DNA of 63,668 bases, counting the filler, from Octopus bimaculoides (lineage: Eukaryota), in assembly GCF_001194135.2 (NCBI RefSeq). It is 6 parts of 6 records of this genome, joined end to end, with 100 filler letters (N's around TTAATTAATTAA, not from the genome) between each part and the next. Parts side by side here need not be neighbours in the genome. Positions count along the whole stretch, not along the records: positions 14,214 to 38,610 come from NC_068981.1; 5 more parts are not named here. One strand, 5' to 3'. Below are positions 14,551 through 38,813 of the stretch, piece by piece. A model generated the notes under the pieces. That model did no database searches. It saw only the letters and a program-made list of their open reading frames with translations, and was not told where the DNA came from. The position numbers were made by a program, and so were the translations under genes. Every line of letters begins with the position of its first letter. The first letter of the stretch is position 1.

Positions 14551-14936
14551 GAGACTATCAGCCTGCCGGTAGAGCAGCTTTTTCTGTCTTCTTGTTTGTC
14601 TGTAAGTCTGCGGCCCGCCTACACGCCTGCCAGCAGGTCGGCGTAAGCGACCCGACCAATCACCGTGTTGTGTGTTGTCTTGCCTTTCAACCTTGTCTTG
14701 CAGTGTTATGTGCACGCCACTTGTTATTGTTATCTCAGTGGAGAAGTCGATCTGACAGACGTGCTGTTAACCAACTTGGTCCGATCGGGACAAGCCCCGG
14801 TATACAGACTGACAGAGAGACTGACTGGCATTTAAAATCACAGAAGTGTCAACGTCAACCACAACAACAGCAGCAGCATCACCGAAAGCGAGAGAGGAAC
14901 GAAAGAAAGTGGATCTAATTAATTAACTATACAACA
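14551..14936 (+). promoter_or_regulatory. Putative promoter/5' UTR of the CAP-like gene
   Basis: GC/CpG-richer unique sequence with a CCAAT box (GACCAATCAC, ~14655) and a (CAG/CAA)-rich leader directly upstream of the ATG. It follows a long CT tract ending in a possible acceptor (cccaatAG, 14550). Confidence 0.3.
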
Positions 14937-15089
14937 ATGTGGATGCTTAAATTACTAGTAGCTGTCCAGCTACTGACCCTCGCACTGGCCGGTGGTAGCA
15001 GTATAGGAATAGGACATTACCAACATGCTTTGATAACCTCACACAACAGCTACCGTAAAAAATTGTCGGGAGATGGAGTAAGATCTTTG
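14937..15089 (+). CDS. First coding exon of a secreted CAP/SCP/CRISP-superfamily protein (MWMLKLLVAVQLLTLALAGGSSIGIGHYQHALITSHNSYRKKLSGDGVRSL)
   Basis: ATG in ACAACAATG context with an in-frame TAA at 14916-14918. Encodes an ~18-aa hydrophobic signal peptide and the motif LITSHNSYRKK (CAP helix-1 HNxYR). TTG|GTAAGC phase-0 donor at 15090. Missed by the ORF track because the genomic ORF is only 54 aa. Confidence 0.65.
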
Positions 15090-16392
15090 GTAAGCTTCTA
15101 AATATACTTATTTTTTCTTTATTTGGTCCCTAAATATCTATTACCTTACTTTTTAATGACAGGTGGGGTATTCGCTCAGAAGTAATGTTTTCTTCAAATT
15201 TTTATGATTAAAATGCGGACGGGTTCTGTTTTAAAAACTTAGGACGGAATCAATTTTCGTTTTACCATTTTAGGTAACAGTGAAAATAAATCCTAAAGTA
15301 AGGACAGTTAACAGACAAATATTACTGAAGTGAATTCGAATACCCAGTCTTCGATGAAATGATAATACCAGTTTTTTTTAAAAAACCGAATTATTGTAGT
15401 AATGTTATCTATAGTCGTATTACAGTGATTTCTAATATAGACACAAGACCAGATATTTTTTGGTGAGGGGATGGAGGCAGTCGTATATATCGATCCGATC
15501 TCAGTACTTAACTACTTCAAAGTAGAAATAGTAAAAATAGACAACTCGGGAGATCGAAAATACGTTATTTACGTTTATTCATTGTCACGCAAATTCTCCA
15601 GGAGCCTTCCATTAATGTGAAACGTGAAGTTTCCAAGAGACACCAACTCGTATCACATGGGTTTCGATTATTGATAAGTAAACAATTTCGCCACTTTTCT
15701 GCACGATAGGCCGGCCGATAGGCTATTACTGTCGAGTAATGCATAAAACACAAACCAATGCTCTGAAATCAATACAACAGATACAAGCCCATTGATGGAT
15801 ACTGCTGATACTTGATACTACATATCTCACAATTGGACGAAACGAATCGTTATCGGATTGAAACTTATCACAGCATAGGGGGTAGGGAGCTGAAAATATT
15901 TCACAACTGATTGAATAACTATTTACCTACGTGCACACATGCACAGTACGCTAATGGTAAATAATACTTTCACAGTTAGCGATAAAACGTTAACTACATT
16001 CAGTATATATATATATATATAAACAATATATGAGTATATGCATATATATGTACATATATATAAACATGCATATATATGTATGTATGTATTATGAAAATAT
16101 ATACTATACATATATAAATGTGTGTAAATGCATAGCTATCTATATGAATATATGTACATACATACGTATTCATATAAAGATACGTGTGTGCACGTTCATG
16201 TAAAATATATACATATATATGCATATATATAATGTATATATACGCATATAATATATATCTGTGTTTGTGTGTGTGTGAGAGAGAGAGAGAAAGAGAGAGT
16301 TTGTATTTATGTATGTGTATAACGTTGTGTGCATATGTGCATATATGTACACATATAAAGATTGTGCAAGAGTTATAAATATGTATACATTT

Positions 16393-16425
<33 letters not shown>

Positions 16426-17166
16426 NNNNNNNNNNNNNNNNNNNNNNNNNNNNNNNNNNNNNNNNNNNNNNNNNNNNNNNNNNNNNNNNNNNNNNNNNNN
16501 NNNNNNNNNNNNNNNNNNNNNNNNNNNNNNNNNNNNNNNNNNNNNNNNNNNNNNNNNNNNNNNNNNNNNNNNNNNNNNNNNNNNNNNNNNNNNNNNNNNN
16601 NNNNNNNNNNNNNNNNNNNNNNNNNNNNNNNNNNNNNNNNNNNNNNNNNNNNNNNNNNNNNNNNNNNNNNNNNNNNNNNNNNNNNNNNNNNNNNNNNNNN
16701 NNNNNNNNNNNNNNNNNNNNNNNNNNNNNNNNNNNNNNNNNNNNNNNNNNNNNNNNNNNNNNNNNNNNNNNNNNNNNNNNNNNNNNNNNNNNNNNNNNNN
16801 NNNNNNNNNNNNNNNNNNNNNNNNNNNNNNNNNNNNNNNNNNNNNNNNNNNNNNNNNNNNNNNNNNNNNNNNNNNNNNNNNNNNNNNNNNNNNNNNNNNN
16901 NNNNNNNNNNNNNNNNNNNNNNNNNNNNNNNNNNNNNNNNNNNNNNNNNNNNNNNNNNNNNNNNNNTTTCTATCCTGTTCGACTGTGTTCTGTTGTCCCT
17001 TACCAGATGGTATAATGTAGGTACCAGACAATGCACTATGATGAACGTGAACGACTAAATCCCTTGAAGCCGGCGCTCCCATTACGGCCGCTGTCTAATT
17101 TTGTTGAAACCAGTTGAGGAATATGTGTGTACTTCTGTGTCTATGTGCATGTGTGTGTGTGTGTGG

Positions 17167-17197
<31 letters not shown>

Positions 17198-18232
17198 CGT
17201 GCGTGGATGTGTGTGTGTGTGTAAATATATGTGTAAATATATGTGTGTATACTTACAGAAGATAAAAAATATTCACATTGATAAAAAATATTCACACACA
17301 TATACATAGATACATACACACACATATATATACATACTAACAGAGACTGACAGATAGACAGGCAAAGAAATACACATACACATGAGCACACGCAAGCACA
17401 CACACACACACACACACCACCCTCCCTTTACCACACATACATAAGGTATTCTAGCTGCACGTCAATTGAAAACTGGTATCCACTTACAACTCACCTGGCG
17501 ACCGGTTTGAACACTTTGTACAGACTTCATGTCACATGTGTTATATATAAACACACTGTCTTTTACAGTAAATATTTTACACACACACATACATACGCAC
17601 AAATACATATACACACTCACACAAAGATACATACATAGTTACGCACACACAAATGGCATACATATATATCTGTATGCATGCATGTGTATGTATGTATGTG
17701 TGCGTATGTATATATATTTGTGTGTGTGTGTATGTATATATATATATATGTATATATATATANNNNNNNNNNNNNNNNNNNNNNNNNNNNNNNNNNNNNN
17801 NNNNNNNNNNNNNNNNNNNNNNNNNNNNNNNNNNNNNNNNNNNNNNNNNNNNNNNNNNNNNNNNNNNNNNNNNNNNNNNNNNNNNNNNNNNNNNNNNNNN
17901 NNNNNNNNNNNNNNNNNNNNNNNNNNNNNNNNNNNNNNNNNNNNNNNNNNNNNNNNNNNNNNNNNNNNNNNNNNNNNNNNNNNNNNNNNNNNNNNNNNNN
18001 NNNNNNNNNNNNNNNNNNNNNNNNNNNNNNNNNNNNNNNNNNNNNNNNNNNNNNNNNNNNNNNNNNNNNNNNNNNNNNNNNNNNNNNNNNNNNNNNNNNN
18101 NNNNNNNNNNNNNNNNNNNNNNNNNNNNNNNNNNNNNNNNNNNNNNNNNNNNNNNNNNNNNNNNNNNNNNNNNNNNNNNNNNNNNNNNNNNNNNNNNNNN
18201 NNNNNNNNNNNNNNNNNNNNNNNNNNNNNNNN

Positions 18233-18293
<61 letters not shown>

Positions 18294-18721
18294 CATACAT
18301 ACATGGATGCATGCATACATGCATACATACATATGTAGAGAGTGGAGGAAGAGAGGAGTAGGGATCTAGGAATACACTCTTTCATTTAATCCATATATGG
18401 TGTACTGTTGAGAGGTTAATTAATATCGTTGGTATCTCTAAAGTCAATCTGGCTGCTACATCTGGGACTTATGTTGTTTGCCAAAGAATATTTACGCACA
18501 CACGTGGTCAGGCAAAGTGTAGAATTATATCTGATACATATGTCTGTATTCTTAGTAATATTTATAGGATAATAAATGCAACAGGATAATACACAAATTT
18601 TCATTCTATACTCCACTCACTCTGCTTGCTTTATTCTCACGCGCACGTATATACATAGGTGTTTATATCTATCTGTCCCTCTATCTATCTATCTATCTAT
18701 ATATATATATATATATATATA

Positions 18722-18868
18722 TACGACGGGCTTTTTTCAGTTTCCGTCTACAAAATCCATTCACAAGGCTCTGGTCAACCCGAAGCTATATAGTAGCTGG
18801 ATGTCGCGCAGTGGAACTGAACCCGGAACCATGTGGTTGAGAAGTAAACGTCTTACTCCACAGCCATG
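18722..18868 (-). mobile_element. SINE family C, 5' half
   Basis: Reverse complement of the head and core. Related pieces lie at 9095-9230(-), 59375-59470(-), 40965-41118(+), 2770-2900(-) and 62385-62715(-). Confidence 0.8.
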
Positions 18869-18872
18869 TATG

Positions 18873-18904
<32 letters not shown>

Positions 18905-19122
18905 TGTATACGTGTGTGTCTGTGTGTGTATTTATAAGTATATATGTATGTATATATGCGTATATATACACACTACATACATACATGTGCTTATATACGT
19001 GTGTTCGTATATACTTATATATACATTTATACATGTGCTTATACATATGTGTGTACATACGTGTATGTGTGCGTGTGTATGGATTTATGTTGTCTACACA
19101 CGGACATTGTGCATGTGTGTGC

Positions 19123-19182
<60 letters not shown>

Positions 19183-19402
19183 NNNNNNNNNNNNNNNNNN
19201 NNNNNNNNNNNNNNNNNNNNNNNNNNNNNNNNNNNNNNNNNNNNNNNNNNNNNNNNNNNNNNNNNNNNNNNNNNNNNNNNNNNNNNNNNNNNNNNNNNNN
19301 NNNNNNNNNNNNNNNNNNNNNNNNNNNNNNNNNNNNNNNNNNNNNNNNNNNNNNNNNNNNNNNNNNNNNNNNNNNNNNNNNNNNNNNNNNNNNNNNNNNN
19401 NN

Positions 19403-19454
<52 letters not shown>

Positions 19455-19679
19455 CAAGCTATAAATCACTGGTGCGTTAGCAGTACATCATTTGGATGCC
19501 ATACTGGACTAAAGAATCTTGTTTCATTTATATGCTACGCTGGACTATAGAATCTATTTGCGAATGTTATACATGACTGTATGCTTTTTTTTTTCCTTTC
19601 TTTTCATTATGTGCTGGGTTAGGAAAAAGGGTTTGGGCCCATGACCTTTTTATGCCTTCTGTGACTAGTGTGTTTGCTG

Positions 19680-20420
19680 TCGTTTACGTTCCGTTTAAAC
19701 AGTTACAATTCAACAACTGCGGGGAAAAATATGAGGGGTGTGATGATTCCAGAGAGGCGTTATTCTAAAGACGAAAGATTGGACTTAGTGATTGGACTAT
19801 GGTACCTAGAGAGTTAGACGCAACAAAGGTGACCAGAGGAAGAAAGGTGAGTGGATAAGCGGACGAGGGACATGACCATCAAATTCCAAAAAACAGCGGC
19901 CGGTAATGTAGCAACATACTTATGAACCAGAAACTGGAGCGTGTCTGTAAGTGATTTTATATGCGAATCAGTTAAACGGCCCGATTCTGGATGCGATCCA
20001 AGATGTCGGTGTGTGTAGCAGCAGCACCGTTCCTGATGCGGAAGCAATATGTGTGTAACCCAATGTGGGTCACACTTGAGTTTCATTGTCGGTAAATGTT
20101 GAAAGAAGGGATAAAGTATATTTTGGTCTGGAGAGAAGGGCCAGTCTTTGAGATGCACGCCTTGCTATATTAAAACTGTATTTTCGCCAGGAGAGACTCT
20201 TCATGATAACAAGGTAAAACATTTGGATTGGCCGTGAGGGCTCTAGCTGAATATCGCTCATGGTTACTGGGAGAGGATAGAGGAAAGTTGTTTTTTTTTA
20301 ATTTCTTGCGTTTGAAATTTTTACTTTTAAAAGATTGGCACACCCACTAGAAGATGATTTCGAAGTGTCCGTTGATGGAATGAAATAGATATGCACACTT
20401 TGTCTTTACATGCAATATTT
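19680..20420 (-). mobile_element. Highly degenerate mariner transposase remnant
   Basis: Fragments MKLKCDPHWVTHILL (WVPH-like), HPESGR, AAVFWN (ATVFWD-like) and HPSYFSPQL (HPPYSPDL-like) occur in the expected order. Boundaries are approximate. Confidence 0.45.
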
Positions 20421-20518
20421 TCAGTGATCACCCGAGCCAGTTTCAATCTTCTAATGGAAGTGACCGAGGATCCTGTTTAACTGTTCACACACAACTTATA
20501 ATTGCTATTACTAAATGC

Positions 20519-20730
20519 TTAAGGCGGCGAGATGGCAAAACCATTAAACTCCGGATAAAATGTTTAGCATAATTTCTTCCGGCTCTACGCTGAGTTCAAA
20601 TTTTGCCGAGGTCGACTTTTTATCTTTTCAGGGGTCCATGAAATAAGTACCAGTTGTGCACTAGAGTCGATGTAATCGACTTCTCCCTTTCCCCAAATTT
20701 GTTGTCTTTGTGCCAAAATTTGAAACAATT
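20519..20730 (+). mobile_element. SINE family B
   Basis: AAGGCGGCGAGATGGCAAAACC head, family core, and TTGTGCCAAAATTTGAAAC end. Confidence 0.8.
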
Positions 20731-20738
20731 AGTACTAA

Positions 20739-20973
20739 GAGCTCACTTTAATCGGAATGACTTGATAACACGCTACTTCAAGCGCTAACAATGTTTCGCT
20801 TAATGGCTATACTCTGCTACAAAATATATCTGATGATTTTAGTCAACACTGCATGTGATAGTCAGATGGGAACATCTTTATATGCAATCTTTATATACAG
20901 TATCTTCATGGACATACGAAATTTAATAGTTAAACAGTAAAGATATATTGACTTTCTTATGAGTGTATGTATG

Positions 20974-21017
<44 letters not shown>

Positions 21018-21273
21018 NNNNNNNNNNTGTGTGTGTGTGTGTGTGTGTGTATAGAAAGAGAGAGAGAGAGAGATGCATATATATTTATGCATGCAAATAT
21101 GCATATGCGTAAGTATATATGTATGAATATAAATAAAAGATGGAGAGAAAGAAACATAGCTGTATGTGTGTCTATAAGAATGTATTTAAATACATGCATG
21201 TCTATGTGCGCGTGTATATGTACCTGTATGTATATATACACACACAGCTATGCTTCTTTCTCTCCCTCTTTTA

Positions 21274-21314
<41 letters not shown>

Positions 21315-21411
21315 NNNNNNNNNNNNNNNNNNNNNNNNNNNNNNNNNNNNNNNNNNNNNNNNNNNNNNNNNNNNNNNNNNNNNNNNNNNNNNNNNNNNNN
21401 NNNNNNNNNNN

Positions 21412-21507
<96 letters not shown>

Positions 21508-21722
21508 CATAAGAAAACCAATATATCTATACTGTTTAAGTATTAAATTTCGTATGTCCATAAAGATGCTGCATATAAAGACAAGATGTTCCCATCTGAC
21601 TATCACATGGAGTGTTGACTAAAATCAACGAACATTTTCTGTAGCAGAGTATAGCCGTGAAACGAAATATTATTAGTGCTCGAAGTAGCGTATTATCAAG
21701 TCATTCCGATTAACGTAAGCTC
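20739..21722. repeat. Diverged ~220-bp inverted repeat around a microsatellite core (foldback)
   Basis: 20739-20964 aligns to the reverse complement of 21505-21722 with scattered substitutions (roughly 80-85% by eye). Confidence 0.88.
21412..21504. repeat. (CT)n microsatellite
   Basis: Directly visible. Dozens of other (TG)n, (TA)n, (TACA)n and (CT)n tracts occur window-wide, most abutting N gaps. Confidence 0.97.
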
Positions 21723-22288
21723 AGATTGACTATAACTATAATTCAAAATGCCCAGTGGTATTTTAAACCATGCCACGCTAATTATACGCGAAGAATACGT
21801 TTCGAATACAATTTTCTGAGGAATGCTCAATAGCTTACTCTATAATATTCAAAAAACCTGAAGTACTCCTCGTTGAATTCGACGGAGCGCTTTTCCCTTT
21901 TTAAAAAAATAATATATGAATTGGAATTGAGCCAAAAATTAAAAACTGGTTTCCTCCACCATGTATCTTAGTATTCTTACACCTGCCTCCTCCTCTATAT
22001 GTGTATGTCTTCTTTACCAGTCTACCTGACGGTCTGTATCTTTGTGTGTGTGTATATCTGCGCGCGCATGCGTGCTTTATGTAACTTGTCCATCTTTCAT
22101 CTATCGCTACCTAACTCTTTTTGTGTTTGTACTTCTTCCAAGCATATATACACAAACATACATATACACAAATAAATAGCAACCCGCACAGTCACAAGCA
22201 TATATCAACAAATACACACGCATAGCTACACACACACACATACATACATACTTACATCCGTACGTATATACATGCATATATATAACTG

Positions 22289-22351
<63 letters not shown>

Positions 22352-22529
22352 GTATGTGTGTGTATGTATATATGTATATGTATACATATATACACACATA
22401 TGTATGTATTATGTATGTATGTATGTATATGGCGGCTGTCAGCTCCTTATCTTGTATGACCATCTGTTGTGCTAAAATTACAGGCGTAGTGCCCCTTTAT
22501 GTCATGTCTTCCCATGACGATGTCAACAG

Positions 22530-22778
22530 ACATCTGTATGGGATGATCAAAACTCCGCCTCCAACACTCCTCATAGTATTTCAACAAAGAATGCACCCAC
22601 CCAAGCAACCAGAGTATCATCGCGACTGCTCACGCTTACACCATACAATCCGTGCCCTCCCAAACAAGGAAACTCCGGAAGTTTCCTGTATTTCATTGGC
22701 TCAGATACACGTAATACCCTAATTGTAGCAACAAATGCCCCGTTATCTGTTTTGGGTTCCAAGATGCTCGAGTTCTAG
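22530..22778 (+). CDS. Weak candidate Ser/Thr/Pro-rich terminal exon ([16 protein letters not shown]...LGSKMLEF*)
   Basis: GC-richer unique island with a tcaacAG acceptor and 82 open codons. An overlapping frame from the acceptor at 22483 is also open for ~80 codons, so the frame is ambiguous. Confidence 0.2.
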
Positions 22779-23158
22779 AACTTAGGAAGTAAAGGAAGCA
22801 AAAATCTCATGTAACTCAAATTTTATAGTGATAAAGGCTTATGCAAACAAGTGCCGGTCTGTAAATGCTTGAAGCTGTTAAGCTGGTGTGAAGCAAAAAA
22901 AGGGATAAAATGATCAGAGACTACTACACCGAAGGTTTAAAGTCAGAGTAATCTTCCATATGCATTTATATATGTGTACATATGTAAATACACTTTTGGC
23001 TGGCCATTGACTCCTCTTGAGTTCATCCGTTCTTCTACAGGTTTTGCTTTTCAATCCGCAAGGTGTCCAAATAGATCGCCTGTTTCACAATGAAAATTTG
23101 GTGGAGTTGTTGATTTTGTCACCGACGACTTGACTAAATACACACGCGAGCGCGCACA

Positions 23159-24696
23159 CAATATCTCACAGAAGTATGTACACTCCTAAAAATTTCAGTA
23201 AAATCGCCATTACTCTGATAATATCGAAGGAAATCAAATGAAATTTGTACTGAATAAAATTTATTATACATGCAAACATTATACAAATTTGAAACACAAA
23301 ACAATAAACATTTTGAAAGATATGAACGAAATATTAATTTTCAACCGATACAGAAATATGTACACCTTAAAAGATTATTTGCTATACTCAATATTTGGTA
23401 TGACCGCCCTTGCTTTTGATGACTGCATTAAGCCTTCTGGGCATAGAGTCGATTAAATTTCTGCACATAACCGATGAAATCGACCTCCATTCATCTTTCG
23501 ACTGTGTTACATTGCGGGGTTATTTCTCCTCAAACTTCCTTTTCAAAACACCCCACAGATGTTCTATTGGATTTAAATCAGGTGATATGGTAGGCCAAGG
23601 CAATACCATTACCGTTTTATCTGATAAAATCTTAGTCGCCATCTTTGAAGTGTGTTTAGGGTCATTATCATGCTGGAACATGGAATGTCTACCTAGTTCC
23701 TTGATGCTTTTCAACAGTGTTTTCTGCAATATGTCACAAGAAAGCCTTGAATCCATTGTTCTCTCAATAAATGTGAGTTTTCCCACATCAGCCGCATTCA
23801 TGCATCCCCAAAACATAACACTTCTGCTGCCGTGTTTCACGGTAGGCACGGTGCATTTGTTGTTATTGTCTTTACCTGGTCGTCGCCATACTCGTTTAAT
23901 ACCATCTGACCCAAACGAGTTGATTTTAGTCTCATCAAAAAAAAAAATAATAATAATTTTATTCAAAAACTCCTCCTTACTCACATAGGTTTCGGCAAAA
24001 GAAAGACGACTTGATTTATGCCTGGTAGTGAGGAGAGGCTTCTTACGAGGAATGCGTGCATGAATATCACACTGGTTCAAACTTCGGTGAACTGTTTGGA
24101 CGGATACACTCTTTCCACTAACAGAAGACACTTTTGGGGCCAAAGATAAAGCGGTACGACGCCTGTCGTCCATCACGCAACGTTGGATGTGGCGAATATC
24201 ACGTGCAGTTAAAACAGGACGACTGGACGATGTTTATTGCTTAGCCGTCCAGTAGCTTTGTACTTCTGAATTACTTTGACAACTGTGTTTATGCCAATAT
24301 GTGTTCGTTTGCTAATTAACTAGTATCCTAAACCATTCTTGTGCAAATTAAAAATAATTTTCTTCAAATCTTCAGACAATTCTTTTCCTTTTGGGTTCAT
24401 TTTAATAACAATGAAGATTTTCACCACGGTACACAAATAGAGTTTCTGCGGATGCAATAACAATAACGGGTGCAAAAATGCCAGGAGAAATAATTTATTA
24501 GAACTAATATTAGAATTAATATTTCGTTCATATCTTTGAAAATGTTTATTGTTTTGTGCTCCAAGTTTGTATAATGTTTGCATGTATGATATATTTTATT
24601 CAGTATAAATTTCGTTTGATTTCTTTCGATATCATCAGAGTAATGGCAATTTTACTGAATTTGTTTAGGGGTGTACATACTTCTGTTGAGATACTA
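23159..24696 (-). mobile_element. Tc1-family DNA transposon, near full length, decayed
   Basis: ~180-bp imperfect TIRs (23159-23339 and 24514-24696) beginning CARTATCTCA(A)CAGAAGTATGTACAC, with TA at the right end. Encloses a transposase pseudogene. Confidence 0.93.
23388..24400 (-). pseudogene. DD34E Tc1 transposase pseudogene
   Basis: Starts MNPKGKELSEDLKK. Catalytic motifs FDETK, QHDNDPKH and SPDLNPIEHLW, with 34 residues between the second D and E. C-terminus MPRRLNAVIKSKGGHTKY*. Lesions: TAG at 24320-22, a 1-nt frameshift in the GRP linker near 24225, and TAA at 23520-22. Confidence 0.93.
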
Positions 24697-26939
24697 TATA
24701 TATATAGAGAGAGATATTCCATGAGTACCTTTTCCTACATCGTGACTTTCATACTTTATGCGGTGGCCCCTTTCAGTTAATTGAAATTATAACCGTAATG
24801 AAAAGAAAATTCATGAGCGTTAATAAAAAATGTTGACGTCGGACAAGAGAGATTGTTCCCAGAATTGCAGTCGTCTAAAAGCTAAATCAAACTGTGAATA
24901 CTGGGAGTGAGAGATTGATCTTTGATAACTAAGGTGATAACTCAAGACATGTTTTGATCTTGTTGAACCTCATCAGCAAAGAATGCGCAATACGAAGCTA
25001 ACTAACCACAAACTGACCTAGAGGGTTTATGGTTTTGGTGTGAAAATAATTCATTGAGGCAATTTAAAACAATAGCATTGGAAAATGTATGATGTCAAAA
25101 CAAATTCGGTCAAACAGGTATTTGCACACACACACACATGTTTGCATACGCATAAACATAAACACACATACACAAAAACACACATTCACACATACACGCG
25201 CGCACACACACACACACACTCACACGCGTGCGCACAAACATACACACGCGTGCGCGTACATGCCATTATATATCGGAGCTATTCCATTTTTTATTTATTT
25301 ATTTCATACATCATCCGCTTCTGTTAGGCAGTGACAGACGCGTGGGAGTGTGAAGAGGTGGTAGGCCTTAATTCTTTCTTTTCGAAAGAAATATCGTAAG
25401 TTAATGATTCTTAAGTAGTCCCAAGACCATAAAATTTGGACGGAAATATAGAATATAGTCGAAGACATCGAACCCCAGTGGTACTCGATACTTTTGATCC
25501 CAGAATGATTGAAGGCAAAGTTGACCTCGAGCGAGGATTTGTTGAACTCATGAAGTAACGATCCATTACTAAATACCGTAAGGTGGTAGTGATAGTGATG
25601 TTAAGAGAATTGAAAGTAAAGCCGTGTAGTTAGTGCTTCAGTTCTGGTTCAAACCACAGCAGGACTCGAACTCTTTACAACAGTAGTATTCTTCAAATTA
25701 CACTCATATGTCGGAAGAAAGAACGAAAGCGTTCCATAATGCATCCAAGATAAACAGTCATTACTGAAGCACTTTCTAGAAATAACAAGTGCATCTATCT
25801 CAAATCACGTCACCATTAGGCCTCAAGTGGTAGACTTAATCTTTCGATGGTAGACTTAATCCGACTTAACTCCATCACTTGGCACCATAGCTGCCTCTAG
25901 CGAACTTCATTCTCTTATTCTGTTGTAAATATTTAGGTCAGGCTTCCAGTTTGAGAATACATACTTCCCTCTCCTCCACCATTCTCGGGGACCCAATACT
26001 GGTTCATGGACACTGTTTTCTTACCTGAGAAAATGAGGACAAAAAGTGAGAGAATACTTTAGTTAATGTAGTTGTAGATTCATGAGGTGAAGGTGAGGGA
26101 GTAACAGCATGAACATGTCTGGGAGGTTTTTGAGAAAAGATCTGCGCAATCAAGGATGGTCTCAGTCTCAGCAGTAACAACAATAATGAAATGTTCACGA
26201 AAACTGTAACAAGTTATCACAGCAGAAATCAAATATACCACACTGTTGTTTTATCCATAATATAGAAGTTGGGATGGATCGTTAATAGTTCAATACTTAG
26301 ACACGTTAAAAGTGCAATGAATTTCAATTCACGAAGTAGATAAAATATATCAAATTATATAATCCGTTATTGATATTACATTGAGATTCAGGATTTCATA
26401 TCCATAGATGGTGGATAATCACCAGATGATTAAAAAGCCGACTTGTTTCTCGAATATCAGACATAATTATTTTGTCATACAGTTTCTAGTCTTGCATTAT
26501 TTGAATGAAAATATAAGGGATAAAATTCATTGAAAATTTTGTAGAAATAAAGTAAATGAAGACTTAGATGGCATGATTATAATAAGGGGGGGTTCAATAA
26601 ATAATTATATGGTAGTAAATACGGAAAGTTAAGGAGTTGAAATTATGATGATGTAAATAATTACTTTGTAACATAGCATAGAGAGTTACGGACAGCGATT
26701 CACAAAATGAATGGCAGAGACTGGTATGAAATATTTCATTTGGATTAAACAGAAAAGGAAAATAGCGAATGTGATTGTTCGTGGTAAATAACTAAATATT
26801 AATACGTTAAATTGGATGTTGATATAATCTTCCAATGTTCTAAGTGACATGTGAGCGAGATCTCGGATTGGCATTTTAGATACTCTGTGGGTTTATTAAG
26901 TTTGTTGACTATGAGGCTTTCGTTAGCAACGTTTTATAT

Positions 26940-27420
26940 CATTTCTCTATATACTCCAGCATCCACGTGTTAGATGTTGTAGTATGTTCTTTCAAATGCC
27001 AGACATAAATCGATAGTTTTGTTACATTCCTTTTCTCTACATAAACTATGGCGAGTAATTTGTTTAAGTTTATCTTCCACCATACCGTCGTAGTGTTGCC
27101 GTATGATATGTAATTTTGTTTTGGGTGAGGTGACTTTTGCTTCGTAGATACAGCTTCGGCGTTGTATGGCTTAATAAGAGGACATACATTTGTATTTCTG
27201 CATATGCAGTTAATCTCGGTAAATTTAATTGGTTTTCTTGCAACAAAATTTGTCATAATAGTGGTGCAGCTGTAACCAATTTAAGGTTATTTCTGTATGA
27301 TAGTTTTCTGTCTCTATGGTTGATGGGGAAATGTTTGTTTATTAAGGCTAGGAGATTTTTAGAAATGTTTGACTTAACATTTAAGAAGATGGGTGTAACC
27401 AGATAATACTACAGCGTTTC
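26940..27420 (-). mobile_element. Penelope-like element remnant: linker plus GIY-YIG endonuclease region
   Basis: Translates NVKSNISKNLLALINKHFPINH...NNLKL, then NCICRNTNVCPL, YISYGNTTT and RNVTKLSIYVWHLKEH..TW, all typical of PLE C-termini. Frameshifted. Confidence 0.72.
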
Positions 27421-27666
27421 TTACTACTGGATGATGGCTATTATTTTCTACTTCGAAATTTTTTTTTACTTTTATGTCAGAATATGCAAGTTTTTCCTTT
27501 TCTTTTTTGTTTTGTTTTGTCTTCTCTAGTGTTCTTTAATCTTCTCAATATCACAATTAAGTTTGCTTCTAAAGGTAATGACGTACGTAGGAAATTCACA
27601 TTAGCTATTACAGTTATGATATCGGATTCAAATGGTTCTCGGTCCTTATCTATATATGTATATATG

Positions 27667-27721
<55 letters not shown>

Positions 27722-28099
27722 TTTTCCTCACTTGTAGATATACTAGATATACTAAACTTTCAAAGACAAGGCTGGTTTCATCCTGAGCCATCATCTTCAT
27801 GTCAAATACAGTTACTGTATTGTCTCTGATAGGTAACTTATCGTAGCGCAATGATCAATTTNNNNNNNNNNNNNNNNNNNNNNNNNNNNNNNNNNNNNNN
27901 NNNNNNNNNNNNNNNNNNNNNNNNNNNNNNNNNNNNNNNNNNNNNNNNNNNNNNNNNNNNNNNNNNNNNNNNNNNNNNNNNNNNNNNNNNNNNNNNNNNN
28001 NNNNNNNNNNNNNNNNNNNNNNNNNNNNNNNNNNNNNNNNNNNNNNNNNNNNNNNNNNNNNNNNNNNNNNNNNNNNNNNNNNNNNNNNNNNNNNNNNNN

Positions 28100-28168
<69 letters not shown>

Positions 28169-29088
28169 GCGAAAATGTTTGTATTTTCAGTGAACCCTTT
28201 ATCGTTTTTGTTCAGGAGAAGTCTGAAAAGAGAAACACCAACATGAAGCATAGTTTCTTTGTGGGTAACCTAAAATTATATGCCAAAATTATGGATGGCA
28301 TTTCGAAAATTCATGATCCGTTTACGATATTTTCTATAATGATATATGGAAGAAATGTGACTATGATAAATGCTCCGTAGATGATTGTAAAACAAACTAA
28401 AACTACAAATCACTCTTGCAACATATCTGTTAATGACCTCACTATTTCTCTGATTTCTCTCTGTAACTAACGAAGAATTCTATAGATACTTACTGCTGTA
28501 TGTGACACACTGTGATGAAACTTGCAATGCGTAAAGCATAACCAGAGAATTAAAATATATGATCCTCAGAGTTTTACGCATACAATAACATATTTGATGT
28601 ATCTGTATTCCAACTAACATATAGACTGAACAATTTGATGTTAGATGACATCCAAGCAATAGATATTGCACCCTGAGAACAATTAATGGTCAGCAAAAGT
28701 GTTCACCTCAATAGTGATACTACTAAACCGAAAGCACGGAGACGAGGAGATAAAATTAAGATAGCTTTTGAGTATTGCACCGATGGCATCTACTAACCAC
28801 TAAGTTTCGAAGAGCACCCATGGATCAAGCTTACATACATGAAGCAATTAGCATGACCAAAGATGTAAAATTATTCTTAAAAAATTGAAGTATTTTTAGA
28901 CTAATAACTTCAGAGGCACACTCACGGAAGTTTCGGATTTACCATGACATAATATAAGATGACAGAGGCATGTACAGTCAATGTGTTCCATCTTGTACTG
29001 ACAATTAGTATGTTAGCTTATACTTTGAATACTATACTGTTGGAATCCAGGAACAGGAAATAACATGACCTAGATCTGACAACCGATA

Positions 29089-29164
<76 letters not shown>

Positions 29165-29309
29165 CACACACACACGCACACANNNNNNNNNNNNNNNNNN
29201 NNNNNNNNNNNNNNNNNNNNNNNNNNNNNNNNNNNNNNNNNNNNNNNNNNNNNNNNNNNNNNNNNNNNNNNNNNNNNNNNNNNNNNNNNNNNNNNNNNNN
29301 NNNNNNNNN

Positions 29310-29353
<44 letters not shown>

Positions 29354-29699
29354 CATGCTATATGTAGTACTCCATTTACATACACATACGCACGCGCATG
29401 CGCATATATATATTAAGGATTTGCATTAAAGGTTCTAGATATTTGATGACGATATCTAAATTACTGTTTGTTTATTAGAAAGGTATTGATATTTTAGGAC
29501 ACTATCAATAATGTAATGAATTTGTTTACGCATCTGGGCTGCTCAAATACTACCTTCCTTATCTAATCATAAATTTTGTTTACTGTTCTTTGGATATAAT
29601 TTAGAAACAACATTTACTGTTAGAGATGCAAATGTAGAAACAAAAGACAAAGGAAATGAACGGAAAATTTACAGTCACTACCACTTACATTATACCTGT

Positions 29700-30390
29700 A
29701 CTTATTTGGGCATTTATATCTAATTAGAAAAGTTATATTCCAAGGGTAGTTCATGCTTTCAGTGAAAATGTTCCGAAACGAAGAGTGGCGTTTTTCAAGT
29801 GGTGCTTGAGACGATTTGTAAAAGATGCGGCTAAATTTAAACTAAATGGCTAAATTAACTACCACAGTTGCACGTACTGAGTTTCTCCGCATGTTACGGA
29901 GGAACATCATGTTAATTTACCAGAAGCTAAAGTATGATACGGTTTTTCATCAAAAGATTTAATTGGCCCATTCTTTTTTGACAGTACAATGACTGGTTTT
30001 ATTCACTTGAACCTGCTGCAACAATCTGTCATGTCAAGCATTCAAGAGGATTTTGAAGATGTGGATTTTCTTTAACTCTGGCAATACGATTTTTGTACTG
30101 TTTCTTAGTTTGTGAGGATCGTCGATGTCCGCAATCGTATCTGCTTCAAATTTATCTCTAGTTCCATCGTTGGCAAATCGCCCAAGTGGATCTGTTTGAA
30201 ACTCTCTCCTAAACTGTTTTTTGCACTTTGACTACGTCTTCAAACTTCTAGTGGAACATTAGGAAAAATTTCCTTTGCACCGAGCTTAGTCTAACTTCCT
30301 TCATTATTTCTAAGTTAAATCTAAAAAGAAATGAAAAGTGGATTAGCAGCTGTTAAAGTGTGTTTTCGATCCTTGAAACACTCCCTTCTT
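29700..30390 (+). mobile_element. Degenerate Tc1/mariner-superfamily (maT/rosa-like) transposase fragment
   Basis: 29850-30070 translates, with stops, to [46 protein letters not shown]...LNLLQ, matching the NCRxW...VWCG...IIGPFFF..TVTG pattern. Boundaries are approximate. Confidence 0.6.
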
Positions 30391-30411
30391 TACCCATTCG
30401 CTCTCGTTCTG

Positions 30412-30440
<29 letters not shown>

Positions 30441-30445
<5 letters not shown>

Positions 30446-31235
30446 CATTCTGTAAGCTATGTGCTCAGTAATTCTTACATTGAAAGCTAAATGATATTTC
30501 TGTTAAATGTTATATTCTTATGCACACGCAGTACTTTGTTACTAGGACCATAATATGACTCAGGTGGAAATAACGAATAGTTTTATTCGGTAATACATAT
30601 ACATACATACATATGTGTGTGTGTGCGTGTATGTGTGCGTGTGTGTGTGTGTATATNNNNNNNNNNNNNNNNNNNNNNNNNNNNNNNNNNNNNNNNNNNN
30701 NNNNNNNNNNNNNNNNNNNNNNNNNNNNNNNNNNNNNNNNNNNNNNNNNNNNNNNNNNNNNNNNNNNNNNNNNNNNNNNNNNNNNNNNNNNNNNNNNNNN
30801 NNNNNNNNNNNNNNNNNNNNNNNNNNNNNNNNNNNNNNNNNNNNNNNNNNNNNNNNNNNNNNNNNNNNNNNNNNNNNNNNNNNNNNNNNNNNNNNNNNNN
30901 NNNNNNNNNNNNNNNNNNNNNNNNNNNNNNNNNNNNNNNNNNNNNNNNNNNNNNNNNNNNNNNNNNNNNNNNNNNNNNNNNNNNNNNNNNNNNNNNNNNN
31001 NNNNNNNNNNNNNNNNNNNNNNNNNNNNNNNNNNNNNNNNNNNNNNNNNNNNNNNNNNNNNNNNNNNNNNNNNNNNNNNNNNNNNNNNNNNNNNNNNNNN
31101 NNNNNNNNNNNNNNNNNNNNNNNNNNNNNNNNNNNNNNNNNNNNNNNNNNNNNNNNNNNNNNNNNNNNNNNNNNNNNNNNNNNNNNNNNNNNNNNNNNNN
31201 NNNNNNNNNNNNNNNNNNNNNNNNNNNNNNNNNNN

Positions 31236-31284
<49 letters not shown>

Positions 31285-31448
31285 ATGTATATGTATTACC
31301 GAATAAAACTATTCGTTATTTCCACCTGAGTCATATTATGGTCCTAGTAACAAAGTACTGCGTGTGCATAAGAATATAACATTTAACAGAAATGTCATTT
31401 AGCTTTCAATGTAAGAATTACTGAGCACATAGCTTACAGAATGTATAT
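30441..31448. repeat. Near-perfect ~170-bp inverted repeat flanking an N gap
   Basis: 30441-30612 versus the reverse complement of 31277-31448; one mismatch seen. Confidence 0.9.
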
Positions 31449-32915
31449 GGAATGTTCAAGAAGCTCATGAGTCATATATTATTCATTATCAAGTAATTAA
31501 GATAAAAATGCAGTGGAAGGCGCCGTGTGACTCTTCTCTCCAAATAAAGAGACTTTCATCCTTACACATTCACTAGCAAATATTAACCAACGTTAATCTT
31601 GCCTGATGAACTGGACTGCAAATCTGATCATTTATAAACCTTAGTACCATCAATCGTTGATCTCTCGCTTTAGTATTAATTTTTTGTCTATCTTTAGTTG
31701 ACTTATAACACTAGGAAATAAGCTTTAACACGTTAATAATATAATACATGCCTTTAGAAGTTAATTATTACTCGTACTTTTATGTGTCAGTATTCACTTA
31801 AGATGAGTTGAGCCGTCTTTAATAAGTGAATCCACAACTTCCAGAATGGAAAAAGACTACGCCTGGCGGTCATAGATCTCTGGCGCAGAAATCATCAACT
31901 AGTCGCAATTCCATCTACAGACACCGTTTAACGATTGAAGCTAAGAGTCAGTTCTAATAAACATAAGTGAGCATTTTTATCATACCTCTTGGCAATGCTT
32001 ACCATCTTTCTATCCACTCATCGTTGCAGTATTTATATGTCCATGACAAAGACAAACTCACAGAAAATCAGTGGCCAATCATTGAGCATAGACGCGATAA
32101 GAAACATCTATTACATAATGGTATATTTATCTTGATTGCATATTTTGTAAACACTTCGACCTTTTTTCTATTATATTCTACTGGTTGTCGTTTTAAATAT
32201 TTTCCCTTTCTTCGCTGTCACACAATATCATTATCTCGCCGTTTTATTTGCAATTCGTTTTCAGATAGAATTTCTTTCTCGTTTACTTTTCACTCTTTTC
32301 TTTCCTTCTTTCTTCTACTTCCTTTCTCTTTAACTTTTTCTTTTTCTATTTTTCCTTTTTTCCTCTTTTCTCTTTCTAAATTTAGTGCAATGACCTATGC
32401 TGTAATACATCCGTCAACGTTTAGCGGTTTTGGTATGTCAGATTAAAAGGCTTTAGCTTGTGAATTGCTTCCCTTTTCCTTGAACATTTCCACTCCCTCT
32501 TAATTTTCTAATCTTTTCCCTTTACGAGTCCATCTCACATTTTTCTTTGCTCGCCTATTTAGTGTGTTTCCTTCTCCTTCTCTTTCTCTTTTACTACTTT
32601 CCTCTTACATATACTCTTGGTCGTCCGCTTTCGACAAAAACAGGTTTCGTTATATAAACACTATATAAACACAGATTTGAAAATTAGACGATTTCAGTTG
32701 ACAATTGACAAAACCAACATGCAAAAACGCCATCCATGGCTAGTAAAATTACCCAACAAAACATAAAATAGATCAGAAAAAAATAATAAACAAAGCAAGG
32801 AAGGACATACAACCATCTTTTGACTCGTTTCATTCGTGTACCTTGACACTAACGAATACATATTTTGACACAACTTTTTCAAACGTACCTCTTGTTTCAA
32901 TCCGAAATGTGCGTG

Positions 32916-32957
<42 letters not shown>

Positions 32958-33358
32958 CGCATGCATACACACGCAAACATACCTACGTGTATATATATAT
33001 ATATATATANNNNNNNNNNNNNNNNNNNNNNNNNNNNNNNNNNNNNNNNNNNNNNNNNNNNNNNNNNNNNNNNNNNNNNNNNNNNNNNNNNNNNCATGCA
33101 TGTATGTATGTATGTATATATGTATATATATGTATATATATATTTATGTATGTATATATATGTATATATATACATATGTATATATACATATGTACATATA
33201 TATACATATGTATATACATATATATATGTATACATATATATGTATATATATATGTATATATAGATATATAGATATATATATATATGCTAATATATGTGTG
33301 TGTGTATATATATATGTGTGTGTGTATCTATATTTATATGTATATCTATACGTATGTG

Positions 33359-33411
<53 letters not shown>

Positions 33412-33412
<1 letters not shown>

Positions 33413-33582
33413 GTATCAGGACAATACAATTGTCCACTTAAGACAACTACCCCCTAGGACAATTACTCCCTTGGCTAATTACCCCTTCTCCAATATATTA
33501 AGAAGTTTTAAATCATCTGTTGTCCGCAGGGGTAATTATCCTTGGTGGGTTACTGTCCATGGGGGCAAATGTCCTAGACTCG
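33412..33582. mobile_element. Putative MITE with repeated inverted subterminal motifs
   Basis: The left half carries GGACAA(T/C)TACCCC-type motifs several times. The right half carries their complements (GGGGTAATTATCC, GGGTTACTGTCC, GGGGGCAAATGTCC). No clear TSD. Confidence 0.5.
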
Positions 33583-34249
33583 TAATATATGTGTTTGTGT
33601 CTTTGTATGTATATGTATACATAAATATATGTATGTATATGCATGTATATATGTGTGTGTGTATGCATACACGCTATGAACGCATATGCGTGTGCGATTG
33701 TGTGTGAATTCACGTTTGTGATCTTTCGAATTTGTGACCTCTGTCACACTATGCTCTGCCAATGTCAATGTAGTTAAATCTCAATGATTCAGCCGTTTAT
33801 ATATAAGCCAATACTCTGGAATGGTACTGATCACCGTTTGTAAATGTCAGCAGCTTGAGCTTGAGTTTCTCCAGGAGCATTTACTTTGATAAGGCAAGTA
33901 AGTTCTAAGTCCAAAGCTCTATCAAAGTAAATCTGATATCTTGCCTATGACAACAGTATGTATTCATTGCTGTTGGTATCGTTGCCACCGTCGTCGTCTT
34001 TACTCTCTAGCGTTCCACCATCAATCCAGTTTTTTTTTTCTCCCTTAAAAATATCTGACGTAATATCCTTGTTAAAACCCTCGAGGAATAATTAAGTTCA
34101 TGGCGTTTTTAAAAGTTCTTAAATAACAATATATTTTACGTGCCTTCGTATGGCTCCATAAATGTTGACACATTATGTTGACATTTATTCTTCAAGAATA
34201 ACTTTTTTTCTCTGGAAACAAGCCATTTTATCTTGTTTTAAGTTACACT

Positions 34250-34462
34250 CAAAGGCGGCGAACAGGCAGAATTGTTAGTACACCGGACAAAATGTTTAGC
34301 GACATTTCCTCTGGCTCTTTACATTCTGAGTTCAAGTTCCGTTGAGGTTGACTTTCCCTTTCATCCTTTCGGGCTTAAAATCAGTTGCGCTCTAGGCTCG
34401 AAGTAATCGGCAAGATCCATCGCCCAAAATTTCTGGCCTTGTACCTCTAAGTAGAAAGAATT
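34250..34462 (+). mobile_element. SINE family B, degenerate
   Basis: Head, core and 3' end are all recognisable. Confidence 0.75.
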
Positions 34463-36402
34463 AAGTAACACTCACAGCTGTATTTTCATGCAAACACACA
34501 ATAAACCGCGATAGTTAAAATTCGAATCAGACGGTTTTAAAGCAACTCACTTCACTCGGTTGATTCTTGTGCGATCTTCTGTCACATACGCACATCAGAT
34601 ATTATTTACCTCCTTTTATTGCGAGTTAGATATTACAAATCGATCCCTGGTCACATTTTACTATGCACATGGTAATTCAACTGAATGAAGCAGGTATTTC
34701 AATTATTTTATAAATGTTTCTAACTGTCCTTATTGGAAGGAATCTCTAACCCAAATAATAATACAACTTCAGCTGTAGTGATAGTGATAGTAGCAATAGT
34801 TCTCTATCAACAGCGCAGCACCAACACTTTAAAATTGTCCCGTGTTCCGTTTGGATTGTGAACTATTATAGCAACCCTTAATAACGTGGTCTTACTTATA
34901 TCTGTGTCATCACCACAGTTGTGTGCCTGGAAAATAAATTAGCCTTAACAGCAAACAGTAGCAACAGCAGTAGATGTAACAACAGCAACTGTAGTAGCTG
35001 TATCCATCTCCGAATCTTAAATTTCATGTTTGATGTCTACACAGAAAATATCCATTTAATTATTAACACGACAAACATGAAATGCTTTAAGGAGAATTAC
35101 TTCTAAATGCCAACTGTTGAAGTTCAAAGTCCAAACACTTACAGTGGGCAGGGCAGTAATGACCTGCTTAGGTCATGTTTTACTGTATACTGGATAACTC
35201 CGTTGTGAACTTGCTGAGAAAGAATTTGCTCAGCCTTTCCCAACTTGGTAGTGATATAAATGATTAGGTTCAGCCTTCCTATTAATGGTTACCTCCCAGC
35301 TACTCTCTATCAGTTGTAATCGGTCCTCTTAACCTAATTTTTAAGGATTCGGTTTAGCCATCTGTTAATTCTGTTGGCTGGAGTGAAAGATTAACTGATC
35401 ATTTATGTTATATCTTCATTTAGTTTTCTTTCCCTTTCCTAATGCCCCCTCTCACTCTTTCTCTCTCTTTCTCTCGTTCTCTTTCTCATTATTCTTATAT
35501 TATATGTGTGTGTGTGCTTATCGTCTAGAACTCATGCTTTACCATTTTTTTCCGTTTCTGTGGTATTCATTTATAAATCTCATTAATTATAAAACTAACA
35601 TCAGTAATCAATAACGTAAAGTTAACTTTACACAGTCTATCAATTTTCAGAGTTTTAGTTTTCTTTCCAATTTCAAAATCAAATGTAACTACGACTTGAT
35701 GAAATACCTCGTAGGCTTTCATGAATAATATAAGTGTCTTGCTTTCACGTAATGTGTTAAATATTTTTCAGTGTGGAAAGACTGTTATTCTCCAGACTGA
35801 CTTCCGCTGAACATACAGGCACGTCCTGTAAGTGATTGAAGCCAAGTCAAGGACACGATTCACTCCGAGCATCTGGGGATGTAGTCCTTACGTGCAGTCA
35901 TTCAATAGTAGCTACGCTAGACTGGTTTCTTTTAAAGTTATCCATCAAAGCTTTGCATCTGAGTGGATATGAATACAAATTCAAGCTAAAGATATATCAA
36001 TTATGTGGTATCCTTATTGCATTATAGCTGTGGAGTATAACTCTTATAGTACTTGCTTGTAGTGAGGTGGGACTGACAAGAAACATTGAATTACCGCCCA
36101 ATATGATATCCTTACACCGACTCGACCAGCTGTTGCAATGAATACTTTATGGAAACATTTCAATAAAACAGGAATTAATATTCAAAGTAAAAGAATTGAA
36201 AATACTTTCAACCATAAACTAGCTCACCAGGTGATATCATACATTATGACTACAGGGAAATAAAGTTATGCATCCGTCGTCAAAGTAAATTACTAAATAC
36301 ATTCACAATTATAAAGACATCACTTACAGTTTCCAATTGAATTTTATCTTGATTCATAAACGACAATACACCACATTAGTTATGTAACATTTATTTATAG
36401 TA

Positions 36403-37044
36403 GGGCGGTAAGCTGGCAGAATGGTTAGCACGCCAGGCGAAATGCTTAACGGTATTTCGTCTGCCGTTACGTTCTGAGTTCAAATTTCGCCGAGGTCGAC
36501 TTTGCCTTTCATCCTTTCGGGGTCGATAAATTAAGTACCAGTTATGGACTGGGGTCGATGTAATCGACTTAATCCGTTCGTCTGTTCTTGTTTGTTCCCT
36601 CTATGTTTAGCCCCTTGTGGGCAATAAGGAAATAGGTATTTCGTCTACCGTTACATTCTGAGTTCAAATTCCGCCGAGGTCGACTTTTTCTTTCATCCTT
36701 TCGAGGTCGATAAATTAAGTACCAGTTGCGTACTGGAGTCGATCTAATCGACTGGCCCCCTCCCCTAAAATTTCGGGCCTTGTGCCTAGAGAAGTAAAGA
36801 AAAAAAAAAGAACATTTATTTATAGTAAGGTGGCGAGCCAGCAGAAACGTTAGCACGCCGGGCGAAATGCTTAACGGTATTTCGTCTGTCTTTACGTTCT
36901 GAGTTCAAATTCCGGCGAGGTCGACTTTTCCTTTCATCCTTTCGAGGTCGATAAATTAAGTACCAGTTGCGTACTGGGGTCGATTTAATCGACTGGTCTC
37001 CTCCCCAAAAACTTCGGGGCTTGTGCCTAGAGTAGAAAAGAATA
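36403..37044 (+). mobile_element. Three stacked copies of SINE family B
   Basis: Repeated GTTCTGAGTTCAAAT..CCGAGGTCGACTTT..CATCCTTTCG.GGTCGATAAATTAAGTACCAG core at ~36475, ~36655 and ~36895, with nested TSDs. Confidence 0.92.
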
Positions 37045-38813
37045 TTATTTATAGTCAATGCAATCAAGCTTTCTCTTATAACTATTTAGCGTTGATTATA
37101 GATATTTACATTATCTACTATCCAAGGAGGCGTACTCTAATGGGCTCCTGACCTACTAGATATTCCTCAAATCACACCCCATAGTCTTAATGAAATATAA
37201 TACAGTTCTAGTTATCTCTAGGAAAGCGAGATGTCACCGCCGAGCTAATATTTTCGATCACAGTTCTGCTTGATCAAAGTTAATCTGGAACTAAACAACA
37301 ATAGTAGTAAATAGTGCAGTGATGTTGCTCTTCTTTAGACAACTTTATTTTTCCATGAATCAACGACTTTCTTAAGTTTTAAATCCTATTTCAGATACAG
37401 TTTTGATAAAATTCCTTTGTCCCCTTTCATATGAAATTTCATTAACGCCAATGTTTCTTTTTTTTTTTCTATTCTTATTACAAATATAATTTCAATTGAT
37501 TAAAATTTATTTTCGGCTCACAACCATTAACTATGATAGCCAGCTCGTTTTACTATATGTAGCATGTACTGAGTTTCACATGATTCTTCCAAAAGCCTTA
37601 GACATTTTAGTGCATGTCACTAACATCTATATTATTTTATTTTATTTCAAGATCAATTTCCAAATTTGTTTTCACATCACCGTATTTATGTTTATTCTAC
37701 TCTTACAAAAGTGACGCTGCTCCTCTGATTTCTTAAAATCATTCTGTCAACCATGAAAGTGTTTTCATTTCCCATTATTCTTATCATGTCTCTCCAACAG
37801 CTTTTCATTTCTTTAAAACAAACAAATGATTCAGTTCGTGGTTTAAGATTTTTGATTTTTGTTTTTTTCTTTAATGGCTTAGTCAGAGGGAAAATTATAG
37901 CACCCATGACTTTTCTATGAAGGCTTCCAAGGTCAGTAGCAGGTAGAGAGGGAGACCTAGCCCGAATGCTTCCAACAGGTAGTGATGCTTAACGGAGCGA
38001 CAGATTAACTCTATCCCTGAACAAAAGACAACGTTCTCGCCAACGAGATTCTACATAGATTCCTTGAACTAACTTTCACCTACAAGATGACTGATATCGG
38101 TGGTATAATGATGGTGGTGGTGGTGGTGGTGGTAATAATAATGATACCGATACAACGCATGGCTTCAGTGACTCAGCGAAGAAATTCTCTATGTGATTCT
38201 TCGGTTTGCTAGAAATAGCAGTCAAAACCAAATTTCCCTCAAATCACACCCTACTATCATAAAACACAGAAAGGGTTAAATAATGTAGTTTTAAAAATTA
38301 GTCTGAATAAAACGTGGGATGACTTTATACATACAAAAATATGCACACACATACACAAATGCACAAACACACACACACACAAATGCATACATACATACAA
38401 ACATACATACATACATGCATACAAAACGCTCTCCTACTCGACTGGGCGTCGAATAGTTGCCTCGCCAGCGATTGCACAGCCGAAACTTTTACGTTCAAAA
38501 CGGCTTGCACAGTCCGTCACAGACCCTCTCCATCCTACTGACATACTCCAACGACAAGCGGAAGCAAGATATCTAGTGCCAAATGGGCCGCACATATACA
38601 TACACACACANNNNNNNNNNNNNNNNNNNNNNNNNNNNNNNNNNNNNNNNNNNNTTAATTAATTAANNNNNNNNNNNNNNNNNNNNNNNNNNNNNNNNNN
38701 NNNNNNNNNNTACATACATAGATACATACATACATACATAGATACATACATACATACATATTTCGTATCATTCACGGACCCAAATATAAACAGGCAAACG
38801 AATGGCCAGCGAG

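Follow-up and report, generated by a model that had tools for sequence, protein, structure and literature searches.

Proteins of the CAP superfamily are recognized by short signatures that include the GHYTQ-type CAP1 motif, the CNYxPxGN-type CAP2 motif and the CAP4 motif G[EQ]N[ILV], together with a His-Glu-Glu-His tetrad. Within this superfamily, the CRISPs proper, which are known from snake and lizard venom and as mammalian CRISP1-4, combine the CAP domain with a hinge and an ion-channel-regulatory (ICR) domain. Architectures with two CAP domains are more familiar from hookworm ASPs than they are from molluscs.

The locus described here lies in a window of 63,668 nucleotides of Octopus bimaculoides DNA, assembled from six joined parts, and specifically in the part at positions 14214-38610 (NC_068981.1), hereafter the piece. 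The piece is AT-rich (36% G+C), contains many microsatellites and looks like part of a eukaryotic draft assembly. A sequence-only reading of the window had proposed that this piece carries the first exon of an unannotated, secreted CAP/CRISP-like gene whose later exons lie in N gaps, lie beyond the window or were lost.

Identity of the gene

The proposed coding frame opens at 14937 and comprises 51 codons, MWMLKLLVAVQLLTLALAGGSSIGIGHYQHALITSHNSYRKKLSGDGVRSL, with its last nucleotide at 15089.

14937..15089, + strand: 51 codons assigned, by tblastn, phmmer and alignment, to the coding part of exon 1 of a GLIPR1-like CAP gene (RefSeq XP_014788268)

Searched exhaustively with phmmer (HMMER), a library of 1.84 billion representative proteins yielded four matches to the 51-aa query. 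The best of these, XP_029635426.1 from Octopus sinensis ("GLIPR1-like protein 1 isoform X2"; here P0001), aligns query residues 1-51 with target residues 1-51 at 90% identity (E = 6.7e-21). Its 90% cluster includes CAI9715155.1 from O. vulgaris and two versions of an O. bimaculoides record named "GLIPR1-like protein 2", XP_014788268.2 (P0005, 203 aa) and XP_014788268.1 (P0009, 196 aa). The first 51 residues of both versions, which are identical over exon 1 and represent the same gene, reproduce the exon in the window letter for letter, and tblastn of P0005 against the piece places aa 1-52 at 14937-15092 with 100% identity (E = 3.4e-29).

The full protein that begins with exactly these 51 residues matches the CAP profile PF00188 (56.3 bits) and human GLIPR1 (E = 2.9e-11), which bears out the proposal that the exon opens a CAP-superfamily gene, with a predicted secreted product. 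The description of that gene as unannotated does not hold, as it is already in RefSeq as XP_014788268.1/.2 and its orthologues are annotated in two other octopuses. We estimate at about 95% the probability that 14937-15089 represents the coding portion of exon 1 of the annotated XP_014788268, in the GLIPR1-like branch of the CAP superfamily. The gene is ordinary and already known, not new.

A word-indexed homology search gave no match either with the 51-aa peptide or with the 203-aa protein. We treat this miss as a blind spot of the index and not as evidence, the cluster having been found by exhaustive HMMER and exact look-up; taken alone, the word-indexed negative would have misled here.

Architecture of the first exon

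Around and within the coding frame, the following features were located.

14916..14918, + strand: in-frame stop codon TAA, 5' of the start codon, read directly; the stop-to-stop frame starts at 14919
14937-14939, + strand: start codon ATG, with A at -3
14937..14990, + strand: predicted signal peptide, aa 1-18 (MWMLK followed by LLVAVQLLTLALA), from hydropathy, small-x-small at -3/-1 and leader conservation
15033..15089, + strand: start of the CAP domain, aa 33-51, first helix; the PF00188 envelope begins at aa 33 (P0001) or aa 35 (P0005)
15042-15056, + strand: HNSYR (HNxxR, CAP3) motif in helix 1, aligned with HNKFR of human GLIPR1
15090..15095, + strand: splice donor GTAAGC of intron 1, phase 0; the annotated protein runs GVRSL/VWDD, and Logan contigs have a donor at the same aligned position

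Read directly from the sequence, the in-frame stop, the ATG, the leader, HNSYR and GTAAGC all lie where the sequence-only reading had placed them. The exon encodes a leader of ~18 residues that a short linker connects to the opening 17-19 residues of the CAP domain, in which HNSYR provides the HNxxR (CAP3) signature of the superfamily. The leader is Leu-rich, and its 13-residue hydrophobic core (LLVAVQLLTLALA, aa 6-18) averages 2.49 on the Kyte-Doolittle scale, compared with -0.5 elsewhere in the peptide. A Lys in the n-region precedes the core and A-L-A/GG follows it, so that signal peptide cleavage would be expected after Ala18 (A-L-A). The leader is kept both in the octopus orthologues and in the more distant homologue described below.

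At the 3' end of the exon, genomic read-through past 15089 encodes VSF and then meets a stop, three codons on, and no exact database record was found for the resulting 54-aa read-through ORF. In the annotated protein, GVRSL is followed instead by VWDDGLSSAAGTWSLTCDYKEYDKYFGQNMYY, exon 2 starting with VWDDGLSSAAGTWSLTC. The latter segment is the xW...LA..A..W...C continuation that the sequence-only reading had expected of a CAP protein. On the basis of the annotated protein models and of conservation, the junction at 15089/15090 is probably in use.

A chance frame or a real exon

We asked how often comparable frames arise in simulated sequence, using crude criteria: a first ATG, an uncharged hydrophobic core, small-x-small and a GTRAG donor downstream. 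A second-order Markov model yielded 0.44 signal-like ORFs with a donor per ~24-kb piece, against 1 observed, and by these criteria the exon's own features are not shown to be beyond chance. The 51-aa peptide alone, moreover, gives no PF00188 match at E up to 10, with a sub-threshold PapR-like leader match as the only Pfam result, and retrieves no CAP structure from the PDB (PsaA noise). The Pfam check that the sequence-only reading had suggested for the peptide thus comes back empty. Both the simulated frequency and these empty searches are what one might see if the frame were an ORF in AT-rich non-coding DNA that had acquired a signal-peptide-like start and a splice donor by accident.

The failure of the peptide to find the CAP family is expected, however, because the exon holds just 17-19 residues of the 117-position PF00188 profile. 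The accidental origin is contradicted by the 51/51 identity to an annotated N-terminus, by a match of E = 6.7e-21 to an orthologue among 1.84 billion sequences and by a conserved homologue that holds the same donor position. We regard a chance ORF as vanishingly improbable, since it is refuted by the phmmer match, the identical annotated N-terminus and tblastn. The exon is real because of homology, that is, the complete identity to the annotated O. bimaculoides N-terminus and the O. sinensis match.

The homologue that shares the donor was found on two short Logan contigs, L001 and L002 (runs ERR12921339 and ERR12945500), which are 99% identical to each other and carry, in the regions L001:195-425 and L002:195-455, a 52-codon frame, MWIPKLLAVVQLLVAVMAEFASIVDIGPYRHTLITQHNHYRKKIEATKMKEM. 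At 50-52% identity to the exon, it is more distant than the octopus orthologues, and at the DNA level it aligns with the window only over the beginning of the exon (14929-14975, 81%) and not over the flanking sequence. The two have in common the leader, an IGxYxHxLITxHNxYRKK block and a phase-0 donor, with GTAAGT in the homologue at the aligned position of GTAAGC. Conservation of the leader, the motif block and the donor in a distant gene is the pattern that a real exon would leave. L001 and L002 differ solely in how long an intronic A-run is, and this alters the read-through ORF.

Intron 1 and the extent of the gene

Downstream of the donor, the remainder of the piece is assigned to the first intron, which is set below beside the ranges of the annotated genes.

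15090..38610, + strand: first 23.5 kb of intron 1, with microsatellites, SINE-like repeats, a Tc1-type element and ten N gaps (tblastn, Pfam scan)
Gene range in O. bimaculoides (GCA_001194135.2): 146,174 bp
Gene range in O. sinensis (GCA_006345805.1): 162,865 bp
Gene range in O. vulgaris (GCA_951406725.2): 163,730 bp

There are no later CAP exons in the piece, in which tblastn with P0001, P0005 and a second O. bimaculoides protein, P0007, matches exon 1 alone. No family emerged when every + strand ORF of at least 28 aa in the piece was scanned against Pfam, and a six-frame motif scan of the piece (GEN, GHYTQ, LxWD and similar) produced chance matches only. Because the Pfam scan used long + strand concatenates, which lowered its sensitivity, tblastn with the true protein is the stronger negative. 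Among the three whereabouts that had been considered for the later exons, a position beyond the window is the one supported, given a gene of 146-164 kb and none of them in the 23.5 kb downstream. Their absence from this interval is explained by the span of the gene models: where ~200-370 codons are distributed across ~150 kb, it is no surprise that intron 1 should exceed 23.5 kb. The N gaps in the piece, ten in number and 2.4 kb in total, could hold a single exon, yet they need not be invoked.

A different account of the missing exons is that the locus is an orphan duplicate or pseudo-exon, an exon-1-only copy that arose by segmental duplication or misassembly and has no downstream CAP exons. 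The 23.5 kb devoid of later exons would suit such a copy, as would the state of the draft assembly, in which gaps occur and at least one of them is bracketed by a suspicious inverted duplicate. However, the annotated gene takes 146 kb to encode 203 codons, so that a first intron of more than 23.5 kb is expected, and two sister species show a span just as large. The exon is also intact in its start, frame and donor and shows no difference from the RefSeq protein. An orphan copy is thus very unlikely, and we favor the first exon of the annotated gene, followed by a long intron that continues past the end of the piece.

Several repeated elements occupy the intron. A Tc1/mariner-type transposon lies at 23162-24693, with inverted ends (23162-23339 and 24514-24693) that are 91.7% alike over 180 nt. 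It contains a minus-strand ORF of 237 aa (23523-24233) with Pfam matches to HTH_Tnp_Tc3_2 (69.9 bits) and DDE_3 (51.2 bits); this copy is probably decayed, because the ORF has no start codon and its DDE domain breaks off before the end. A SINE-like unit of 184 nt is present in five copies in the piece, of which three are neighbours (36386-36569, a partial copy at 36635-36753, and 36811-36994; 90-93% alike) and two are older (34252-34409 and 20520-20681; ~75%). Translations of this unit (…EFKFRRGRL…, …FHPFGVDKLST…) turn up repeatedly among the ORFs and do not represent genes. An inverted duplicate of 173 nt, 99% complementary between 30441-30613 and 31276-31448, flanks the N gap at 30657-31235 and is either an assembly artefact at the gap or a true palindrome.

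Orthologues and a second CAP domain

The sequence-only reading had tied its proposal to conservation of the frame in a related octopus. Exon 1 is 90% identical to the orthologues in O. sinensis (XP_029635426.1 and XP_029635418.1) and O. vulgaris (CAI9715155.1), and the first CAP domain is ~91% identical. These orthologues, of 364-373 aa, are encoded by genes of similarly huge span and have a second CAP domain in tandem with the first. In O. bimaculoides, the second domain is annotated apart, as the 142-aa XP_014788279.2 ("uncharacterized LOC106882199"; P0007). The C-terminal end of the XP_014788268 model, …SKYSYSHNLS, is unlike that of the orthologues, perhaps through an error of the gene model.

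At a PF00188 cut-off of 21.1 bits, P0005 scores 56.3 bits (E = 7.3e-15) with aa 35-160 on profile positions 3-117, P0007 scores 49 bits, and P0001 and P0008, a further one of the two-domain orthologues, each reach 92.9 bits in two stretches. By comparison with the single protein of O. sinensis and O. vulgaris, the 203-aa and 142-aa models of O. bimaculoides probably represent a split gene model. This two-CAP-domain split is the sole mildly new point of our analysis, and it is an annotation detail. A fuller proposal, in which the gene would encode a tandem two-CAP secreted protein with a decayed metal-binding tetrad in its first domain, wrongly split by RefSeq into XP_014788268 (203 aa) and XP_014788279 (142 aa), is one that we advance tentatively and hold to be somewhat less probable than its negation.

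Comparison with GLIPR1 and CRISPs

The closest solved structure to the annotated protein is human GLIPR1 (PDB 3q2r), which matches aa 33-195 with E = 2.9e-11; weaker structure matches are to a platelet inhibitor (4tpv), hookworm ASP-2, plant PR-1 and wasp antigen 5. Identity between human GLIPR1 and P0005 is ~28%, and the alignment covers HNxxR, xWDxxLAxxAxxWxxxC, WxDE, the Cys pattern and the C-terminal CSxCPxxxKCxxxLC. Judged by its sequence, the octopus protein is a bona fide member of the CAP superfamily, of the GLIPR1-like kind. It would be expected to adopt an alpha-beta-alpha sandwich fold, for which similarity to the solved GLIPR1 structure at E = 2.9e-11 serves as a proxy. The corresponding segments of the two proteins are as follows.

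HNSYR in P0005, HNKFR in GLIPR1: aligned
VWDDGLSSAAGTWSLTC in P0005, TWDPALAQIAKAWASNC in GLIPR1: aligned
FGQNMY in P0005, LGENIW in GLIPR1: Gln in place of Glu
KWNDEAE in P0005, NWYDEIQ in GLIPR1: Glu retained
CNK-AQMLW in P0005, CGHYTQVVW in GLIPR1: Lys in place of His, one residue shorter
LVCLYWPRLP in P0005, FICNYGPGGN in GLIPR1: degenerate
CSKCPEKTKCVNDLC in P0005, CSACPNNDKCLDNLC in GLIPR1: aligned

By this alignment, which concerns motifs encoded outside the window, GQNM of P0005 is near CAP4, whereas CAP1 and CAP2 are present in degenerate form, as NK-AQMLW and LVCLYWPRLP; relative to human GLIPR1, GQN stands for GEN, NK-AQ for GHYTQ and CLYWPRLP for CNYxPxGN. The octopus protein also differs in having no His after the first conserved Cys, and a C-terminal transmembrane segment was not seen in it. 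In the first CAP domain of P0005, one of the four His/Glu tetrad positions is kept by alignment (the WNDE glutamate), and the other three appear to be replaced.

The label "CRISP-like" in the sequence-only reading proved too specific in its strict sense, as Pfam shows only a CAP domain, with no Crisp/ICR domain, and the protein is GLIPR1-like. Neither a hinge nor a Crisp/ICR domain was detected by Pfam in P0005, P0001, P0008 or P0007. The octopus protein has the CAP domain and, as predicted, secretion in common with CRISPs proper, and the Crisp/ICR domain of the latter is absent from the octopus proteins.

Proposed expression and function

The sequence upstream of the exon contains one candidate promoter element.

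14831..14837, + strand: TATA-like TTTAAAA, ~100 nt 5' of the ATG, a possible core promoter judged from the sequence and the composition profile

Around TTTAAAA the G+C content is 0.48-0.53, compared with about 0.30-0.36 downstream, and CpG observed/expected, compared between the upstream region and the intron, gave no island signal. A CT-rich low-complexity tract is present at 14394-14545, ~400-540 nt 5' of the ATG, in the G+C-richer upstream region.

Exon 1 provides the start Met, the leader and the first CAP helix, and we propose that transcription probably starts within ~100 nt upstream of the ATG. The primary transcript would then be spliced at 15089/15090 (GTAAGC, phase 0), across an intron 1 of more than 23.5 kb, onto an exon that starts with VWDDGLSSAAGTWSLTC past the end of the piece. 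Removal of the leader after Ala18 would yield a secreted, Cys-rich CAP protein.

For this product, a role in binding a ligand (lipid, sterol or protein) seems more likely than a metal-dependent one, because three of the four tetrad positions appear to be replaced (Gln for Glu, Lys for His, and no His after the first Cys). Sterol- or lipid-binding CAP proteins offer a precedent within the family for such a role.

The gene could instead encode a CAP toxin of the posterior salivary gland, that is, a venom component. Rapid divergence is usual for venom paralogues, and the present gene, conserved at ~91% over three octopus species, shows no sign of it; its closest relative is GLIPR1 and not the CRISPs that have an ion-channel-regulatory domain. 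A literature search for the gene accessions, and for GLIPR1 in octopus, found no mention of this gene in the papers covered. The toxin reading draws on the predicted signal peptide and on reports of CAP or cysteine-rich secretory proteins among cephalopod salivary-gland proteins (bioRxiv 10.64898/2026.04.09.716377). On balance we consider a venom gene unlikely, and any venom or immune role of this GLIPR1-like gene would be speculative.

Significance

The biological weight of the finding is small, the gene being present in RefSeq under two successive versions (.1 and.2) and having orthologues in O. sinensis and O. vulgaris. Its value lies in calibration: a first exon and its family were rightly recognized from raw sequence through a leader, HNxYR and a GTAAG donor, at a place where a prokaryote-style ORF track, which overlooks short eukaryotic exons, had registered nothing. 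The locus also illustrates that cephalopod genes can stretch ~200 codons across ~150 kb, so that the lack of later exons in a stretch of 24 kb is no evidence of gene loss. Were the tandem-CAP protein proposed here to be real and to show salivary-gland enrichment as well, it would constitute a double-domain CAP venom component.
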